Positions 39,889-50,635 of a DNA stretch of 64,000 nucleotides are shown here, piece after piece. The translations under genes were made by a program, and so were the position numbers. Under the pieces are notes generated by a model that was not told the origin of the DNA, ran no database searches, and was given only the letters and a program-made list of their open reading frames with translations. This DNA is from Ramazzottius varieornatus (lineage: Eukaryota; Animalia; Tardigrada), in contig BDGG01000002.1 of NCBI GenBank assembly GCA_001949185.1, positions 5,260,448 to 5,324,447 on the forward strand. Reading direction: 5' to 3'. Positions within the stretch are counted from its first letter, which is position 1. Every line of letters begins with the position of its first letter.

Positions 39889-40130
39889 TTTAATCAGACG
39901 CCCAAACGTAATTTTGAAATCTGAATGGAGGTAAACGTGGTCACGGTTCCCCTGGGAAGCGAGCTACCGCAGACAGATGGCAGTGCAGTAAGCAGTCCCG
40001 TTACTTCCGTGCCGTGTGTCGCATCGCAATAAAGCGTTACCTGGCGATCCGTAACATCTATATCGATCGAATTCCGTTTATGAATTATCCAACAGTTTTT
40101 AACCGCGGATCGTTCTATTCGAGTTCATTA

Positions 40131-40609
40131 GCCCTCCTCACGACAGGCCGTAAAACTCCGTTGATTGTGTTGATCTTGAAAGTGGATTACGAAGTTTCGC
40201 TTTCAAGATAAGCAGCCCTCGAGTAGCTTATCTTGAAAGCGAAAACGGATTAATCTCTGCACACTTGACTCAAAATTTCAAATTTTCATTTCTCAGCTGA
40301 TTTCTGTCTGCACAGTGCTTCACGTTGCGAGATACCGTTTCACGTATGGGCTTCTTGATACCTATTAGTGTCGGGGATATCGACAGACAGAGACTAGCCA
40401 GAGAGAAAACCATGAATTTCAGTCTAGTCAGGAGGCAAAGTATGCCTACAAACCTAAGTCACCCCGCAAAACTCGCGCATTTCCGCTCACGTTTCCCAGA
40501 CTTTCGAAAAACGCAATTTTGCCTCACTCACGACTAATTTCCGTTGATCAAGCAAACTCAAATCTTAAATCAACCGTTTGCGACATGAACAGCTCGTCGT
40601 GAGGAGGAC
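40131..40609. mobile_element. Putative 479-bp MITE (14-bp TIRs, TA flanks) with an internal 19-bp hairpin
   Basis: GCCCTCCTCACGAC (40131) versus reverse complement GTCCTCCTCACGAC (ends 40609), 13/14 identical; TA at 40129-30 and 40610-11; perfect inverted repeat 40195-40213/40226-40244. Confidence 0.6.
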
Positions 40610-41050
40610 TATTATATCATGTCGTTAAGTTACAGCTTCAGTACTCTGGCTTGCTATGCTTTGCCTTCGCAGCACTTTACCGTCGAAATGTCTTCAAGGG
40701 TTTGCGAACTATGCCTTCAACGTGTCTTCGCTGCATATTGACTAGAACTAGCTCAACCAAATACCACACCACCGAACACCGTACCCGCACATCGCTACTT
40801 GATTATTTGATTTCCTTTTTTTCGCACGGTAACCGCTGACTGGGCGACATACCGTGAGATTTCACGAATTTCCCGCTTCTCCGTATCTCTTCGATTCATG
40901 ATTCTTCGAATTTTTGACACCTGCCGTGACCTGCAAAATCAAAAGCCATCTTCATCACAAGTTGCTGCCTGGAACATCCCCTCCCATTGTGCGGACAATC
41001 ACTGTTTGTCGGTTGAGTGGAAACAGCGTGTCGTTCTGTTTTACAGCGCC

Positions 41051-43883
41051 ATGGAGAAGACATCGACGTGCAGTGCCCCTTCACACGGAGGCATCCCTCC
41101 GCCGATCATGACCATCAACCCTGCTCCCAGCACATCAAACAGAAACATGAAGAAGGAGCTGAACGACCACACAGAAATGCGTCTCGAAGATTTCATGAAG
41201 AAATTCAGCATAGGTACGTCTCTAGAGAACCTCCGATTGATGATCACCCAGATCAAGTCGCGCATAATCTCGACCCACACGAAGTTGCGGAAAGAGGTCG
41301 GTAGCTGGTCATAGCTTCGCACTTTCAGTGTCGAATCAGTTCTTTCTCCCGACTGCTTTTGCTGATTACTGGTGCTTGTGTCGCAGGTGACGATGTATGG
41401 GTCATCAGTAAGGGACAGTGGCACGAAGCTAAGATCATTCTGATCGAAACGTACAAGTATCCCGGAGATGAGACGACATCCGTGCCCATCTACAGAATCC
41501 ATTACCCGGGTTGGGGAAAACGGTAAGCAGGCTCCGACATCCATCGGATGCGGCAGAAGGAAGATGTCTGATGCTTTCTCCTCTTCAGGTATGACGAGTG
41601 GATGTACAGCGATTCGCTGATGCTGCAGAACACAGAGAATAACGCCAAGGCCTCGGCCGAAAACGGCGCCTTGATGGAGGCCAGGTATAAACTCTGGGGA
41701 AAAAATTCACGTTTGTTTTCTCCGGATAGACTTATGCATTACGTTGCGTGATGTTTAATTTTGCAGTGGAATCAACGGCCCAGGCAGACAAGACCAGTTC
41801 TTTGCAGATGACGGCGAAAAAAGCCAGTGTGTTTCAAAGCTCCAATCATGTGCCTATCAACGGAGTATCTCCCGCCAGAGGCCGAGGAAAAGGTGAAAGC
41901 AGAGGAGGCGCGACTGCCAAACCTAGGGGTAACTTCAAAAAATTTTACCTCTAGTGCCGAAGCAGTCGAAGTAATGCGCGAGTTCAACCGAACATTTCGG
42001 TAGTGTACCGTGACTCTCGAATGTCTGGAAAATTATTTATGCTGCATGTTCATCCCATTGAATTTTCCATTGAATTTCGCTCACACGATATTTATTTTCA
42101 ATATTTTTCCAGGTACGACGAGCAGTAAACAAGCGAGAATTGATGCAGGACTGTCTGCGGGAGATAATATTGCAACTGCGGGCTGTCAGTCGCCGGAGCC
42201 TCCCAGCATGGCTTCAGCGCTCGAAAGCGAGCCGACCACCTTGACCGACAACGGAAAAGCGCACAGCTTAGAGCCAGCCAGTTCATTTGAGAAGTCGATT
42301 AACCGACTGGAAAACCCATCCAGTATCAAGAAACCGAAAGAGCGAAGAACACTGGTGCGAGGAAAAAGGTGCCAGCCGGTGAGAGCTATTTATTACGGTT
42401 CGAAAACCGCAGTGATGACGGAGAATCCAGCACAGGCTATTACGTATTTGCTTGTTTTTCAATTAGCCATGACCGAAATGCTACCTGTGGGCACCATCGT
42501 TACAGCCGTTCCTGCTGGAAGTCTTGCCGGAACTCCAGGTCAGCAGTTCATGGTCCAAAGCAAGGTGGAGAACGGTAAGATCGTCTCCTTCCTGGTGCCC
42601 GTCCAACAAGTTACCGAGGTGGAAGAAACTGTTCCCGAAGGTTCGTACCGTAGTTTCAAGTAACGGCTGGATTGTAGTTGTTTCTCTGTAACGGGTGTTG
42701 GCATTGCATGAACGGTCTGTACAGGCCGGCGAAGTGGTTACTGTACGAGCCGGCGAAGTGGTTGCTGTACAGGCCGGCGAAGTGGTCACTGTACGGGCCG
42801 TCCGAGTTGTCTGCATACAAGCCAGCGGATTAACGCAGATCCGCGAGATTCTACTGTTATCTGAGATAACTATGTTTGAATGACAAAGTTACGTGATCTG
42901 TTCTATAGGTACAGTGACTATGGATATGCTTGAGCGAGAACACTCACCAACCGAAAAACCACGGAAGATGCCACGGAAGGAGAAGGATGTTCTTACTAAA
43001 ATTCGCCGACAATGGTAAGAGGCTTTTAAGAGACATACGGTTTTGGTTCTTTGCAGATGAGATATCATGAATGTCATGACTTGTATTTTGTTTAGGGTTA
43101 TGGACAACTTCCGGAAGGGAACTTCTGTGACCTGTCAAACAGTGGGATTGGTACATTTTTCGCCAGGTACTGTTTTCAGTATTGCAGATGCATTTCGCAG
43201 TGGAAACTGAGCTGTCCAGTGAGATACGTGGAAGCGTTTTGTGTTGGCTACCTATTGAGGATTGTCGGTTAAATATTTGTAGGTGGTCGGCGAAAAAGAA
43301 ACAGGATCACGGTTCGGGCGTGCTGAAGTCCCTCGGTCTCCTCTTCAAAGAAGTGCATCAGTGTCCTCCTTCCAAATCGAGCGGAAAGAAAAACGCAAGG
43401 GGAGTGGTCGACCGAGACAATTTGAGGAAATGTGTCGACCTTTCTCCTGCTGGTGAAAAAGAATTCCTGAAGTTGTGCGGTCGAGAAGCATTAAACCATC
43501 TACGTAAGCCTCGAACGATGTCGTTCGCACGACGCAAAGTGGCGGACAATGTAGTGGACGAAGACACCGATGTTAAGGCATACTTGAACTCTGAGCTCAG
43601 ATCCGTAACGATCAGAATATAACGATGAGACTGAACGGAAAGTTATCTTTCAGATGAGGCTGAAAAAACAACCAAGCAACCGGAAAAGTCTGCCGATACC
43701 AAGAAGCCTGAAGGAGCCAAGAAGGCTGGTGGGACCAAGAAGAAGTCCTCGGAGGATAAGTCCAAGTCGAGGTCTCTCGCCAAGAAAACCGCCACAACCA
43801 CCGAAGAAACCATCGAGGTACTGAAACAGAAGTTAGCCAAGAGAAACGGGAGTCTTCCGTCGATCGTGCGGTCCGTTACTTAA
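41051..43883 (+). pseudogene. MULE accessory gene: chromo-barrel (Tudor-knot) domain + RFX-like winged helix + Lys-rich tail; one 1-nt frameshift
   Basis: Spliced exons read FSIGDDVWVISKGQWHEAKII...YRIHYPGWGKRYDEWMYSDSLM (MRG15/Tip60/ARID4-type chromo barrel). Later RQWVMDNF...FARWSAKKK...SLGLLFKEVH...GKKN...NLR resembles the RFX DBD. Exon 43096-43166 is 71 nt where 72 is needed. The 3' end is uncertain. Confidence 0.75.
42717..42831 (+). repeat. 24-bp tandem array (CTGTACAGGCCGGCGAAGTGGTTA) in accessory-gene intron 42641-42908
   Basis: Units at 42717, 42741, 42765 and 42789, plus a degenerate fifth. Confidence 0.9.
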
Positions 43884-44179
43884 TGAGTCTCTGAAGAGTT
43901 CACTTTGTTACTTATGCTTTCGGTTTGAAGCCCAGGTTTTGGAAATATCGGTGATTTGGCCGAGTGCATCCGAACTGCTTTCCTACACTTCATCGAGACA
44001 TTCTTTGTGCGCTTTGGTTTCTGGTTCCTCATCTGGTTCTTGGTTTCTCGTGCGTCCGTGGAATGTCTGGACGAATTAGCTTCCCTGTGTGAATAGTGAT
44101 CACCATTCTCGATCGCGATGCTCTTGTCAAAGTTTCGATGTCTCCACGAAATTGGAAGTATGGCACTTTTCGGTGTCCT

Positions 44180-45295
44180 TATAAGCTGGACAAAGCCATG
44201 GTCGCTTACTACCTCGGAAACAGGAAGATCGTCGAAGTCCTACCAGCTTTCAACAAGTCAGCTTTCGCTAAATGTTCGACTTCCGGTAGAGCTGTCTGTT
44301 TCATACAGATCGTCTGCACTTTCAGGTCGTTCAACTTTGCTGGTAAACGGATCGACGAAGCTCTCCGAGAGCACCTCGAAGCCTTCCGCCTACACGGCGA
44401 ATCTCCCCTCATCGCTCACTTCATGGAGCATTTCGCTGCCAACTGGCACACCACCAATCGCATGCCCTTCCGGCACCAAGATTGCGCCTTGCGTTTAGCT
44501 GTCCGCTTCTTGCGTCGTGACGACACAGAGATCCAGCAAGACATCATGCGGTCGCTGAGGCTCCTTCTCGGTCTCCAGCCTCACTTCTTCTACCGCATGT
44601 CTCGTCAAATAGCCAATGCGCTTTACCAGCTCTTTCAGGCCAATGGATCCTCCAGTATCAAGTCAAAGGATGACTGGAAGCTTTTGTGTACTCTGCTGGA
44701 ATGCGCAGGTGCGGGAGTACGCCTGCCGAAGGTAACGCTCAGAGAAGCCATGCCGAAGTCGGAAAGTCAACCTGTCAACGCCGTCCAACCTGACAACGAG
44801 GTAAAAACGTTTCACCAATCTTTTTCGTTCATCTCAACAACTCGGTGTTCCTTTTCCTCTTTACTTAACTTGTAATAATTACTAGATGTAATATTAGTGG
44901 TCTTTCAAGCACATGCATACACGAAACTGAGCATGCGCTATTGTGAGAACGTATGCAGTTCTATGCGTTGACTTTTCTATTATTGATTTTTGTCTAGTTT
45001 CCAGGTTGATAGAGGTATACATCGGACAGCGAGCTCCACGAAATCCATGGTAGTCCCACGGGTAGCAATACCTGGTCGATGGTCGGTAGGGAAGGTGAAG
45101 TGGTGGAGACGGCAGGGAACCCGGAAGGAAACTTGTTGTCCATACCGGTGGATATCATCCATCACGATACGGACGCTTTCTGTTTGGCCATTGACTCGGT
45201 ACACTTTCTCACCCGAGAGACCGGCCAAGTTACGGTGGACAACGCTTTTGCATTGTCTGTGCGTCTTTGTGGAAGCCAGCATGAACAGTTTAGTC
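44180..45295 (+). pseudogene. GBF1: Captured fragment of the Arf-GEF GBF1 (partial Sec7 fused to HDS region), with introns and frameshifts
   Basis: LDKAMV...RIDEALREHLEAFRLHGESPLI (Sec7) joined directly to LRLAVRFLRR...DDWKLLCTLLECAGAG, then frameshifted DRG(Y)TSDSE, HDTDAF...FLTRE and VFVEASMN. Confidence 0.88.
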
Positions 45296-46064
45296 GGTGT
45301 TTAGTCGGCTTTCACAGTCTTTTTTTCTACTCCTGTGTAAAGTACGATTACTCTAATGACAGGGTATCTGAAAATCTTCCGGAGGAATCCCAAAAGAAGA
45401 AAAGTAGCTTAGATGTACCCTTGCGGAGGAATTCAATACGAAAGAGCTGACAGATTCACAAGAACATTGCAGACGGCAGACAATCTCAAAATCGCTGGTG
45501 CACACAGCTCTGCCGGCTCACATTTGCAACTTCGCCGGGTTGTACGGTACCAAAACCAAAAACAGAAAGCTTGACACCAAATTACCTTCAGGTTGAACAA
45601 CGTTCAAACTGTACGGGCATTGTGTTGTAGAGCAACATAGTACCGTTATCGCCAGAGCTGCTTGAAGTAAGTTAAATAGAATTAAATTACGTATCCTGAA
45701 CGGAAACTTTGAATTACATTTCGCTAGCATCCGTCAAACTTCCTAGGCTTTTGCTCACCACAACATCCTTCGAGGAGTCAAACTTTGGATGTCGAGTCTT
45801 TACACAGCGATTGTTCATGCGATAGAGACGCATTCGAGGTAACGCAATAACACCGTCGCCACCATTCTCGAAATCTTGCTCTGTGTGAGTGACGAGTATG
45901 TCGAAATTCGCAGGTCTTTCGGCAAACAAAGTTCGGCACCCGGGGCATTGGTAACCCATACGAGGATTTGGATATTTCTTGACGACAAACTTATGGGTAC
46001 CGCCATGGTTTGCCTAAACGAAACAAGTATGTTATCCCAGACATGGTAGTCTAAATTCATGCAT

Positions 46065-46135
46065 GGTCACTACGCCGGCGTGTACATCAGTAGGGACAAC
46101 TACGCCAGCGTCTCCTTTGCTAACACTGACGGCAT
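46065..46135 (-). repeat. GCCGGC-motif array (probable transposase intron)
   Basis: Cores at 46074, 46104 and 46128. Confidence 0.6.
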
Positions 46136-46777
46136 CTATGGAGGTTTACCAATTTTGCAACCCTCGCCCTTGTAACAATATCCTTCTTCGTCGAAGTTCA
46201 TTTCGACAGGTTCCTTGTCTTCACGGGTTGTGTAACCGGATCCGCTCAGATTCTTCATCTTTCGCCCAACCTTGTGACCACCAACACTTCGCACGAGCCA
46301 GCTGCCGAAGGGACGCAAATTCTTCTCTAATTTCAGCCATTCCACCATCTGCGCCAAGTTTCCGGACGCCGCGGTCACGGCAATGATATGTTTGCAAGCT
46401 GGGTCTTTATTCTGAGTGAACTGCAAACAACCGCATTTACCTTCCCCGGAAGTAGTGCGGATCTCGACGAAGTACCAGCAGGGCTTCTTCTTGTCTGTAG
46501 ACCGAACTTTCCGAACGACCGAGGAGTTCCATTTTCGTTTATACTGGGTCGTTTCTTCCGCGGAAAGCTTAACCATCCAGCCTTCGTCAGCAGGGCCGTC
46601 CATAAGCTCCACGGCCTTGTCCCAGCTGGCGCGAAACATGTCGGGAAGTCGGTGGTGGCAAAGTCCGTCAGCACATTGGGCGGTCTTGTTCCATCTCCCG
46701 ACAATTCGACCTACAAACATAATGTCACAGTTACAGACTAGCACTATGTACCTGTTCTACTATTAGACGAACCAACA

Positions 46778-46905
46778 AGACTTCACCGGCACAAAGCGCG
46801 GCAGCTCTGCTCGCGTAGGCTTTGGCAACTCCGACGGCGGACAATGCAGCATCTTCGCCAACAAAACGTAACACCACCGGCCTACTTGCAACAACTCCGC
46901 TGGTA
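46778..46905 (-). repeat. 24-bp-period GCCGGC-motif array (probable transposase intron)
   Basis: Cores at 46785, 46809, 46833, 46857, 46876 and 46899. Confidence 0.7.
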
Positions 46906-47919
46906 CTTACTTTTCGACTCGATGCAACGACAACCACGGTGTTCACGTTGCACTTGGGAAACAACCGTTGCACTTTGGACATTATGTGGCTATTGTCGTG
47001 TGCTTTTTCTCGCGACAGGAGAAGGTCTTCTCTGTACTGCTCGGCTATTCTGTATCGGCCTTGATCTTTCAGGGCCTGGAACATGAACACAGTTTCATCG
47101 GCGTACATCTTGAGCAACCTCTCAACCACTTCCCGGGGATCGTTGTGCGTGCCAAAAAAGGCTTTGAGCGTTTTGTTCATGGCCTCGGACAGATTAGTAT
47201 TAGGAAGGTCGCGCGAGAAACCCATCTTTTCACATGCCGGTAGGATTAGTTTCTCGACAAAGTTCTTCTGATGGTGTTTCTCAAACTAGTGCTGGAATTT
47301 GTCATCGCCCAAAGAGCTCTTCATCTCTTTCCACTTCTGGAGATACTGCTCTTCCGAAACTGAATCTACCAGCCCTAGAACATGCTTCCTCACACCAGCT
47401 ACGTTGCGGTGGTACCCCAGTACACAGTTCAGCACGAACGACACATGCGAAGAGGGTACGGGCTTTCCGAGGAAGTATCTCTTGATACCATCTCGGATGA
47501 GTAGAACGCAGAGCGTATGGTTGTGTCGAGGGAAAGCTTCGCGGAATGCGTCGTACAGTGCTCGCTCGCCATCGGTGATGAAATCGAAGCGGAAGTCTTT
47601 TGACATCACATCGACACCTGCATTCACGAGACATTCTCGGAGGTAATTAGCGAACACCGACAACGAAGCTTTCGTCTTCCTCTGAGTTAGGCATGTTGGT
47701 CCGATCAGCAGAGCAGGCTTTCCTGCCTTCTCGTTCACAAGATAAGGATGTTTGATGACTATGACCACCAGATACATGTTGCACAGCTGGAAAGTCAAAC
47801 CGATCTGCAAGCGAAGCTTCACTGCAAACAGAAAACCAAAGGATTAATACCCCATTCAGATGCGCATCACTACAAGACGAAAATCAGCTCAGTCTACAGT
47901 GCCTGTTGATAAGGCGACC

Positions 47920-48080
47920 GACAATGTTACCGGCTCGTACTTCAAGAATTCCGTCATATGTACACTGACAACTCTACCGGCCTATGAACGAACTAATCCA
48001 GTGGCATGTAGATTACCAAAACTGCCGGTGTTTACAGCGGAAACATCGCTGGCGTGTACTTTGTCAACATCGCCGGAATA
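47920..48080 (-). repeat. 24-bp-period GCCGGC-motif array in transposase intron 47822-48109
   Basis: Cores at 47929, 47953, 47976, 48000, 48024, 48048 and 48072. Confidence 0.8.
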
Positions 48081-48944
48081 GGCAATTGCTTTGACCTTAA
48101 TCGACTTACACTTTAGCTTTTGGTCGCCGTTCGTCGCTATCAGTCCAACGTGGTACGGATCTACCACGACGAAATTCTCAGACTTCGATCCATCCTCGTT
48201 CTGGTACTGACGAAGAATGACCCCTTCCTTCCTTCGCAGGTAGCTTTCCACGTCTTCTCCGTATGTGTTCTTGTTGACCGTGTTTCTGATGGTCATGACC
48301 TGTCGCATATCTTTCGTTCCATAATATGGGTTCACCTCGCGGTCGATTTCGGGTATAGTTGACGCAACTTCGAGCACGATGTCTCTAGGGCTCATGGGCT
48401 TGCCGCGTGCAACAGGTGACGCTAGCTTCTTGATCGCGCTTGTGATAGCGCGGTTGGTGTAGGTTTTCCCAGGCGGGAATGGTGCGATCTTGCTTTCGTC
48501 GGCCCATACATACTGGATCACGAAGAAATTCTCGACTGGCTTGCTGCAGCTCTCTGACGACACAGTTGCAAGAAGACGCCGCTTGAAGCCATTGGGCTTC
48601 CCATTAGGTCAACTGTACCAGTCCTTCTTCATGAATAAGAACGGCGTCTGGTCGTCATCAGGCTTGCTACCACTACCAAGCCGTTCATTTGATTCTCACC
48701 ATCTGCCGTTCCCGTCGTCCAGAATTAGTCCGTAGATCCGTTCTCTTTGCTCGGGCCGGAAGGAAACGGCAAACCACGCTTGGCCTTGGAAGCGCTGAGG
48801 TATTCGGTGATATCTGTACGCATCAAGGACTTCTGGATTACACAGCCAGGCGAGAACTGACGCATCGCTTTCCACCGTTTGGAAACAACGACAAAGATTA
48901 TTTCTGCAGAAAGCAATATGATGTGAGTTGGATTTCACTACGTT

Positions 48945-49036
48945 GACAACTCCGTCGGCGTGCACACCAGCATCCTCATCGGCTTATACAACGGCATCTT
49001 CACCGGTTTATACAGTAAAAACTCTGCCGGCATGTA
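48945..49036 (-). repeat. 24-bp-period GCCGGC-motif array in transposase intron 48904-49060
   Basis: Cores at 48954, 48978, 49002 and 49026. Confidence 0.8.
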
Positions 49037-49539
49037 TTGAAAAGAAGCAGCTTGACTCACATCTCATAACATGGTCCCAGAGCGCTGTCCGCCACGGGAG
49101 CTCCTAAGGCAAGATTTCCACGTTCAGAAAATGTAACCACTGGCTGAGATTATCGTTTTGGCTCATGGTCTGATACAGAGAACGACGTCTCCCTGCAACA
49201 GGTAAGTGGTCTCGTTATCGCTGGAGTCACTTGTGCGCTGCTCATAATCCCGACTACTTACGGGGTAATGCACATGTGCACTGGCTCATTAGCGCTGCTC
49301 TGCGTGGAGGCGCCGGTGATAGCTGATGCGTCGTCGTCGTCGTCGTCACTTTCCAACATATATACAACCGACCTATCAGCATTCTTCACCGAAGAGTCTT
49401 TGAAGTTTGCAAAGTTCCTGAAATAACCAATCGATATATTGCTTGCAATGAATATTGCATTTGTGGACTACATAGTGCAAATAAACCACAGAAACACCGT
49501 ACATATCGTCATCTCAATCGGCGAGTACGGCATGTACAC

Positions 49540-49720
49540 GGATTTCGCCGGCGTGAGGAGTAACGTCTACGCCGGCGTGTGGTCTGCCGTCTTCACCGGC
49601 GCTCAATGACAACTGAGACGATATGATACGGACTTCGCCGGCTTGTGCAGTGGCATCTCCGCCGGCGTGTAAAGTGATAACTTCGACGGCTTATGCGAAG
49701 ACAACTTCGCCGGCGTGAAC
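49540..49720 (-). repeat. 24-bp-period GCCGGC-motif array in transposase intron 49418-49781
   Basis: Cores at 49547, 49571, 49595, 49637, 49661, 49685 and 49709 (CTTCGCCGGCGTG on + strand). Confidence 0.88.
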
Positions 49721-50635
49721 ATTTGCAGGTCCAGTAGTTTATAAGTGTTTTTGAGATACGTTGGAAAGTTTGAAAACGTACCTTCCAACTCCAGAAGAGG
49801 TGCTCGGAATATTAGGATCGTCGTCGAGGATGACAGAATTCATAATCAGTTCGTCCGACTCGTCTTGGTTGTCCCATTCCGCGTCGAAAGCGCTTGTAGA
49901 ACGATCGGGGAGTATATCTTGACTGATGTCCTCAGTTTTCAGGCGTTTGACACCCCCACTGCAGCCACTGCTGTTGGGCGAACCAGATGGGAAGATACCA
50001 TCGAACACTATCTCGTTGTCGTTATCCTCATCTGAAATATGCGATGAGTGTTCCATGGCGAGGTGGCAGCGAAAGTCAAAACAGATCCAGGAAGAAAGCG
50101 AGGAGAAAGGCGGAAACAAGTGAAAAATAATTTTTCTTGCGTTGCAAACCCAAGCAACTGGCTTGGCCGTGGCCGCTATTTCGGCTGCGGCGTTTCGGTA
50201 TGCTGAGCGTATATCGTTGTGAGGGGTACGAGTTACGGTGCGGTGTTACGATTATTTTTCGAAATTAAAGTGCAGTACGGTACGAGTTTAGTAGTTGTCT
50301 GGATACGCTGAAGGTTATACTGAAGGCAAAATTCGCAAACCCCCGAAGACATTTTGACGGTAAAGTGCTGCGAAGGCAAAGCATAGCAAGCCCAGAACTC
50401 TATCCTACAGTGCCACTGTTTTTCAATCGTTTGCAAAGCTGCGAACAAGAGGAAACTATAAACTGTAATTTTTTGACGTTTCGCATGCTTCCGAGTTGCG
50501 CAGTTTGCACACGGAAGTCCTGTCACATCCCAGTGACCGTCCGGCCAAGTAAGCCCTTTTGCTATTAGGGCTATGTTATTGGAGTTTATGTTCAGCTTAT
50601 GTTCGATTGCTCTTAGATGGACTGAAGGTGGATAG

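Follow-up and report, generated by a model that had tools for sequence, protein, structure and literature searches.

The gene treated here lies at 41051-43883 of a 64,000-nucleotide stretch (the window, in whose numbering all positions are given) of contig BDGG01000002.1 (positions 5,260,448 to 5,324,447) from the tardigrade Ramazzottius varieornatus. It is part of a transposable element of 9,745 bp (40648-50392), which contains it together with a convergent MULE/SWIM-like transposase gene (MULE, Mutator-like element), and it is very probably the accessory, i.e. second, gene of a Mutator-like DNA transposon. The N-terminal part of its product can be assigned by sequence comparison to the chromo-barrel family, a type of histone-reader domain that transposon helper genes do not usually carry. 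The features of the element are collected in Table 1.

Table 1. Features of the element and of its accessory gene in window coordinates (AF2, AlphaFold2 model; dN/dS, ratio of nonsynonymous to synonymous substitution rates; HMM, hidden Markov model; ORF, open reading frame; TIR, terminal inverted repeat)
Feature	Position	Strand	Remarks and support
Left target-site duplication, CAGTACTCT	40639-40647		8 of 9 bases match 50393-50401
Left TIR, 72 bp	40648-40719	+	93% complementary to right TIR
Exon 1	41051-41213	+	Start codon; Pro/Ser-rich N-terminus; RNA joint 41213/41387, translation
Exon 2	41387-41522	+	Main part of putative chromo barrel (..WHEAK....IHYPGWGKR); RNA, HMM, PDB matches, dN/dS
Exon 3	41589-41684	+	End of putative barrel (YDEW) and next helix; RNA, PDB matches, dN/dS, AF2
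Exon 4	41767-41928	+	RG/K-rich low-complexity linker; RNA
Exon 5	42113-42378	+	Linker; RNA
Exon 6	42467-42640	+	Q/hydrophobic stretch, predicted small beta motif; RNA, AF2
24-bp-period array in intron 6	42717-42800	+	Inverted counterparts in transposase gene, 49546-49721
Exon 7	42909-43014	+	Basic; split Trp codon of 'QW' at end; RNA
Exon 8	43096-43166	+	First part of alleged RFX-like region; 71 nt in RNA
Exon 9	43283-43503	+	Orphan conserved C-terminal region: amphipathic helix, Gly/Arg basic loop, LSPxGxxxFLxL helices
Exon 10	43654-43883	+	Lys-rich tail; stop at 43881-43883; RNA
Copy-specific insert, host Sec7-domain gene fragment	44180-45365	+	Sec7 ORF, Pfam E=1.2e-16
Transposase gene region, several ORF pieces	45714-50119	-	MULE domain 47289-47822; SWIM-like CxC..CxH 46139-46744
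Right TIR	50321-50392	-	Inverted repeat of left TIR
Right target-site duplication, CAGAACTCT	50393-50401		9 bp, 8 of 9 identical to left

The hallmarks by which MULEs are known are present, namely long TIRs (72 bp, 93% complementary), a target-site duplication in the 9-11 bp range (here 9 bp, 8 of 9 identical) and dispersed copies with common termini (at least 7 loci that are 87-97% identical and carry the TIR, and some 8 more, of a subfamily, at about 70%). Membership of the accessory gene in the element is evident from the copies: the same TIR stands inverted beside the gene in six others, the upstream distance from TIR to gene is constant in at least seven loci, and in the second subfamily, B, the accessory gene is followed by the transposase gene in the same order as in subfamily A. 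Within the transposase region, signals from single ORF pieces for the MULE domain (PF10551, E=0.002, 19 bits against a cut-off of 27.6) and for a SWIM-like domain (PF04434, E=0.067, 13.2 bits against a cut-off of 19.6) succeed each other on the transposase strand in the canonical order, MULE then SWIM. Two of the ORF pieces overlap in different frames at 46731-46744, an arrangement suggestive of a frameshift or a tiny intron.

The ten-exon structure of the accessory gene was defined by RNA contigs of public runs, drawn from two studies, placed on 40640-45400 and judged to be RNA by their GT..AG joints. Two long contigs, one per study, are identical to the window (0 differences), and the copy, broken as it is, is still transcribed and spliced. 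The annotation of 41051-43883, RvY_05203, includes fragmentary isoforms (-4, P0012, and -5, P0003). The original prediction, made from the letters of the sequence, had joined exons 41051-41213, 41387-41522 and 41589-41684 and had drawn junctions at 43014/43096 and 43166/43283 together with the stop; the RNA contigs bear out the former joints, all GT..AG, as well as the latter junctions. In the last intron two alternative donors are in use, a GT at 43504 and a GC at 43578 (GC-AG, exon end 43577, seen in contigs of two runs). The GT donor preserves the Lys-rich conserved frame and the GC donor shifts exon 10 into another open frame (43654-43824); the longer form of exon 9 that the latter yields matches the exon as found in subfamily B. 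Exon 6 (residues 292-327 of the paralogue P0010) is predicted to form a three-stranded small beta motif (pLDDT, the predicted local distance difference test, 55-80) that has no family assignment.

About 16 copies are present in the genome. Five of them, the window copy and loci L002-L005, are at 95-97% identity, L007 and L008 at about 88% and L006 at 78%, with about eight copies of subfamily B (L017-L020 and others) at about 70%. Beyond the genome the family is narrow. Three word-indexed searches returned R. varieornatus paralogues only, and an exon 9 profile run against 1.84 billion representative proteins drew eight, five of which are R. varieornatus gene models; P0004, P0006 and P0007 stem from ENA/Logan assemblies, and the last match, the low-complexity repeat protein P0008, is probably spurious, which leaves seven family proteins. 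P0006 retains the motifs of exons 8 and 9, with an apparent retained intron between them. In subfamily B the equivalent of exons 7-8 consists of two long overlapping open frames (L018:4298-4720 and L018:4441-4656; likewise in L017), with a 17-nt remnant where subfamily A has an intron of 81 nt, and the linker carries an acidic tract.

Comparison with the sister copies shows that the window copy has decayed by at least three frame-breaking indels. Exons 1-3 are unbroken, and the frame read across the RNA-supported junctions reaches a stop already in exon 4, an exon 23 bp shorter at 41773/41774 than in L003, L004, L005 and L006. Exon 5 is 1 bp shorter at 42330/42331 than in all other copies, and the last exon lacks 112 bp at 43838/43839 relative to L002, the sole other copy that holds exon 10. 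Exon 8 is 1 bp shorter at 43118/43119 than in L002 and L003, another of the frame-breaking indels. The original prediction had restored one base at about 43118, correctly so, as L002 and L003 have one extra base at 43119 with the frame kept, and read ..NFRKAKFCDL.. there. These lesions are not errors of assembly, since the RNA contigs carry the same ones (0 differences, with exon 8 at 71 nt). Damage in the other copies takes various forms: in L002 exon 9 is shorter by 4 bp and exon 10 longer by 1 bp; L003, L004, L005, L007 and L008 no longer have the 3′ portion of the gene; and of the subfamily B copies, L018 meets a stop where exon 9 begins and has His at the HY cage position, and in L017 exon 1 is frameshifted and GW contains a Cys.

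For the domain searches spliced database models were used (P0002, P0003, P0010 and P0012), and the exons of the window were searched singly. Exon 2 of the window by itself comes close to the Pfam Tudor-knot threshold (E=5.6e-4, 20.2 bits against a cut-off of 20.8), which it misses because an intron splits the domain. With P0010, a spliced paralogue 94-97% identical to the window in the barrel exons, both relevant models are over cut-off, Tudor-knot (PF11717) at 28.1 bits against 20.8 and MSL3_chromo-like (PF22732) at 29.3 bits against 28; the subfamily B protein P0002 gives 27.6 and 28.5 bits, respectively, and P0016 (31.2 bits) and P0017 (30.4 bits) are likewise over cut-off with chromo-barrel HMMs. 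Matches of P0010 to sequences in the PDB include Eaf3 (2e-5), Arabidopsis MRG2, rice MRG701, MSL3 and ARID4A. Both the similarity to MRG15/MSL3/ARID4-type barrels that had been proposed from exons 1-3 and the Tudor-knot match that had been expected of the reconstructed protein are thus borne out at the level of spliced paralogues. So is a finer point, the replacement of the Tyr before EAK by His with the other aromatic positions kept: aligned with MRG2 and MSL3, P0010 retains the Tyr of HY and the Trp of both GW and DEW, i.e. three of four cage positions, and the His is common to all family members in both subfamilies. A C-terminal MRG domain (PF05712), tried as a candidate for the remainder of the protein, was rejected, as P0002, P0003 and the other family proteins scanned gave no HMM match to it at E up to 10.

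Structure prediction points the same way with less force. The AF2 model of P0010 has predicted strands at residues 57-62, 65-79 and 82-93 (pLDDT 60-76), and a structure search with the barrel model returned many Tudor and chromo-barrel entries among its top rows (the tandem Tudor domain of BAHCC1, PHF20L1, ARID4A, Tip60, MRG15, MRG701 and Eaf3), at Z of only 3-4.5. The model is consistent with an SH3-like barrel fold and does not prove it.

The history of selection is relevant to whether such a domain did anything for the element. Between subfamilies A and B dN/dS is 0.04-0.07 for exon 2, 0.12-0.20 for exon 3, 0.19-0.33 for exon 1 and about 0.45 for exons 4 and 10, with an overall value of 0.26-0.27. 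Against copies 78-88% identical in DNA pN/pS is 0.19-0.40, and among the young copies of 95-97% identity it is about 0.6-1.6, as expected of decay after insertion. The comparison of dN/dS across copies, which had been put forward as a check, therefore reveals strong purifying selection on the barrel during divergence of the subfamilies, the barrel being by these estimates the most constrained part of the protein. The low values between A and B together with the pattern of pN/pS indicate that the protein was therefore functional during the history of the family.

This bears directly on the possibility that the gene is passive cargo, a host chromo-barrel gene or fragment captured in the manner of Pack-MULEs and of no use to the element. 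The family is capable of capture, as illustrated by the Sec7 fragment that the window copy took up, and all examined copies of the accessory gene are now broken, as might be expected of a passenger. However, a dN/dS far below 1 argues against cargo, as does the fact that two subfamilies about 30% apart in DNA both have the gene, identically placed and oriented, and the promoter-proximal placement of the gene just inside the TIR resembles that of mudrB; cargo is accordingly a most improbable account. Recent capture from a host chromo-barrel gene in particular was considered and rejected, being unlikely because identity to the host genes is low (32-48% over 23-26 residues) and because these lack the intron that splits GWGKR/YDEW.

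The C-terminal half is a different matter. Here the original prediction had proposed that 43006-43430 is an RFX-type winged helix, on the strength of an alignment to the DNA-binding domain of RFX; the protein would then be bivalent, reading histone marks as well as specific DNA sequence. By eye QWVM.NFRK is like the W(L/M)(K/Q)xNF(R/K) with which the RFX domains of the tardigrade itself begin, a short N-terminal resemblance to PF02257 confined to subfamily A, and helices in the AF2 model are spaced much as, and fall where, H2 and H3 of RFX would be expected in the proposed register. However, the homology tests all failed. No RFX match was obtained by hmmscan in the exon pieces, in the database proteins of the family or in the ORFs of subfamily B (E up to 10 where used), the expected RFX-type match not materializing; a six-frame search of the whole genome with PF02257 found eight host RFX loci over cut-off and none in the family copies; hhalign of the family against five host RFX domains gave a probability of 1% with the aligned stretch out of register; and BLASTP of the family against RFX gave no match. 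In shuffle tests of the ungapped score against host RFX, the observed value was reached by 86 of 300 shuffles for exon 8 of L002, 96 of 300 for exon 8 of L003, 264 of 300 for exon 9 and 49 of 300 for the exon 7/8 ORF of subfamily B (p 0.16-0.9), and the best offsets differ from those proposed. The proposed alignment is therefore no better than chance.

Other features of the region concur. The motif QW..(D)NF is poorly kept, A or G replacing D in L002 and L003 and subfamily B having ..YGIVEYF.., with neither QW nor DN, and no other part of the protein evolves as fast as this region (A and B are 34% identical here, and synonymous sites are saturated). The motifs conserved in both subfamilies as well as in the distant relatives, namely a Gly/Arg loop (RGxGD) and LSxxGxxx(F/Y)(L/C)xL..L..I..R, sit downstream of the alleged recognition helix. 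The absence of a predicted winged helix had been named as grounds for refutation; the AF2 model of P0012 (exon 8 after the frameshift with exons 9 and 10; 9-row alignment) predicts helices only, with neither strands nor wing and a disordered loop at the expected wing site, in a low-confidence model (mean pLDDT 50) from which the first helix of the domain was left out. Foldseek with this model against the PDB returned nothing at E<=0.001, the ESM Atlas yielded no usable feature matches and TM-scores of up to 0.51 to unrelated helical proteins only, and neither phmmer nor profile searches with the C-terminal region had any match among PDB sequences. RFX homology was rejected on the lack of HMM, profile-profile or pairwise signal and on the absence of the motif from subfamily B. 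A bivalent reader of RFX type has accordingly little left to recommend it and is very unlikely, being already largely refuted at the sequence level; specific RFX kinship is excluded there, and the region may yet hold a generic helix-turn-helix. The C-terminal half is a lineage-restricted orphan domain with no assignable fold.

Comparison with known two-gene MULEs gives the accessory gene its natural context. In maize MuDR, mudrA encodes the transposase and mudrB an accessory protein that has no catalytic domain. The same layout is given in a survey of the superfamily (PMC6446971). Shared with MuDR are membership of the Mutator superfamily, long TIRs, a 9-bp target-site duplication and two convergent genes, each starting a few hundred bases inside its TIR; the differences are the animal host and the chromo barrel of the accessory protein, whereas MURB has no known domain. 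Other accessory ORFs known from MULEs are mutB, vanB and vanC besides mudrB. Most animal groups are given with a single ORF in the survey, in which the word 'chromo' does not occur (PMC6446971), and tardigrade MULEs are merely noted as present elsewhere (PMC11071193). No MULE with a chromo-barrel gene was found in the literature searched.

Of these relatives vanC invites closer comparison. VANC of Arabidopsis VANDAL21 (Hiun), like the tardigrade protein, is a MULE-encoded accessory protein, and it binds arrays of a short motif in the non-coding DNA of its element (PMC5735166). The tardigrade element has such arrays, one 24-bp motif being repeated within intron 6 and, in inverted orientation, within the transposase gene, and these may be protein-binding sites. 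The 24-bp-period motif is GC-rich and occurs again at 45520-45545. By analogy, the orphan C-terminal domain would bind the arrays, taken as intronic in both genes, and the barrel would recruit or block chromatin modifiers, giving an anti-silencer for which continued transcription of the broken window copy would not be out of character. The idea is an analogy and no more, and the C-terminal region yielded no DNA-binding fold; VANC, moreover, has no chromo barrel, and tardigrade chromatin biology differs. Unlikely as an anti-silencer of this specific kind therefore is, it has more in its favor than either cargo or an RFX-type reader.

Two neighboring features deserve mention. The insert that distinguishes the window copy (44096-45365, about 1.1 kb) is missing from L002. 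It shares 88-89% identity with a gene at C2:7.34 Mb, and RNA contigs from this Sec7 parent gene match the insert with many mismatches; it looks like a Pack-MULE-style capture of a host ARF-GEF fragment. Adjoining the element at 40123-40620 is a repeat of about 490 bp, very abundant (411 first-look candidates, 39 of them scored at 92-96% identity) and with short inverted termini of its own (..CCTCCTCACGAC). Derivation of this repeat from the MULE as a miniature inverted-repeat transposable element (MITE) was rejected, as its termini are unrelated to the MULE TIR, and it probably represents a MITE from a different family.

To return to the accessory gene of the Mutator-like transposon, an unbroken protein would have comprised an N-terminal chromo barrel of MRG15/Eaf3/MSL3 type, a long disordered RG/K-rich linker, a small beta motif, the lineage-restricted helical C-terminal region with its conserved Gly/Arg loop, and a Lys-rich tail. 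MRG15, Eaf3 and MSL3 bind H3K36me2/3 or H4K20me1. The tardigrade barrel would correspondingly read a methyl-lysine mark, which for its relatives is H3K36me or H4K20me, and anchor the element or its transposition machinery to chromatin of a particular kind, with insertion-site choice or anti-silencing as the benefit. The basic C-terminal half of the protein could contribute nucleic-acid contact, either unspecific or element-specific, and the RG-rich linker, the basic Gly/Arg loop and the Lys-rich tail would lend affinity for nucleic acid. With MRG15, Eaf3, MSL3 and ARID4A the protein shares a barrel over Pfam cut-offs and three of four cage positions (HY, GW and DEW). Differences from these readers are that it has neither an MRG domain nor another domain of a host complex, that the first cage Tyr is His, and that its gene is transposon-encoded with an intron position unlike that of host genes. 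In concept there is a parallel, by analogy, with the chromodomain of chromovirus integrases and with the PWWP domain of LEDGF/p75, the tether of lentiviral integrase, in each of which a methyl-lysine reader of the Royal family is coupled to an integration machine. However, those serve retroelements, the reader being fused to or recruited by the integrase, whereas the putative tardigrade reader has a gene to itself within a cut-and-paste DNA transposon.

How far can this be taken? That the barrel binds methyl-lysine and so couples element or transposase to chromatin bearing it is a possibility to be held tentatively. A shade more doubtful is the broader proposition that a cut-and-paste transposon of an animal carries the gene for a histone methyl-lysine reader of its own, whether as a tether for the Mutator complex or as a VANC-like anti-silencer recognising the 24-bp arrays. 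Several points weigh against these proposals or against the assignment on which they build. With one cage position His rather than Tyr, methyl-lysine binding is not assured. The structural matches of the barrel are weak (Z under 5) and the transposase domains are under the Pfam cut-offs. No intact accessory-gene copy was found among the copies examined, in a search that was not exhaustive, and the accessory system may be extinct in this genome.

The accessory genes of Mutator elements are few, mutually unrelated and mostly opaque as to what they do. The value of the present one is limited by the broken state of all examined copies, by the tiny size of the family and by a C-terminal half to which no fold can be assigned. 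For all that, a putative methyl-lysine reader that was selectively maintained constitutes a testable handle on the interaction between a DNA transposon and chromatin and, if the proposal that it serves the element in this way is true, would be the first self-encoded chromatin-targeting system described for an animal DNA transposon.

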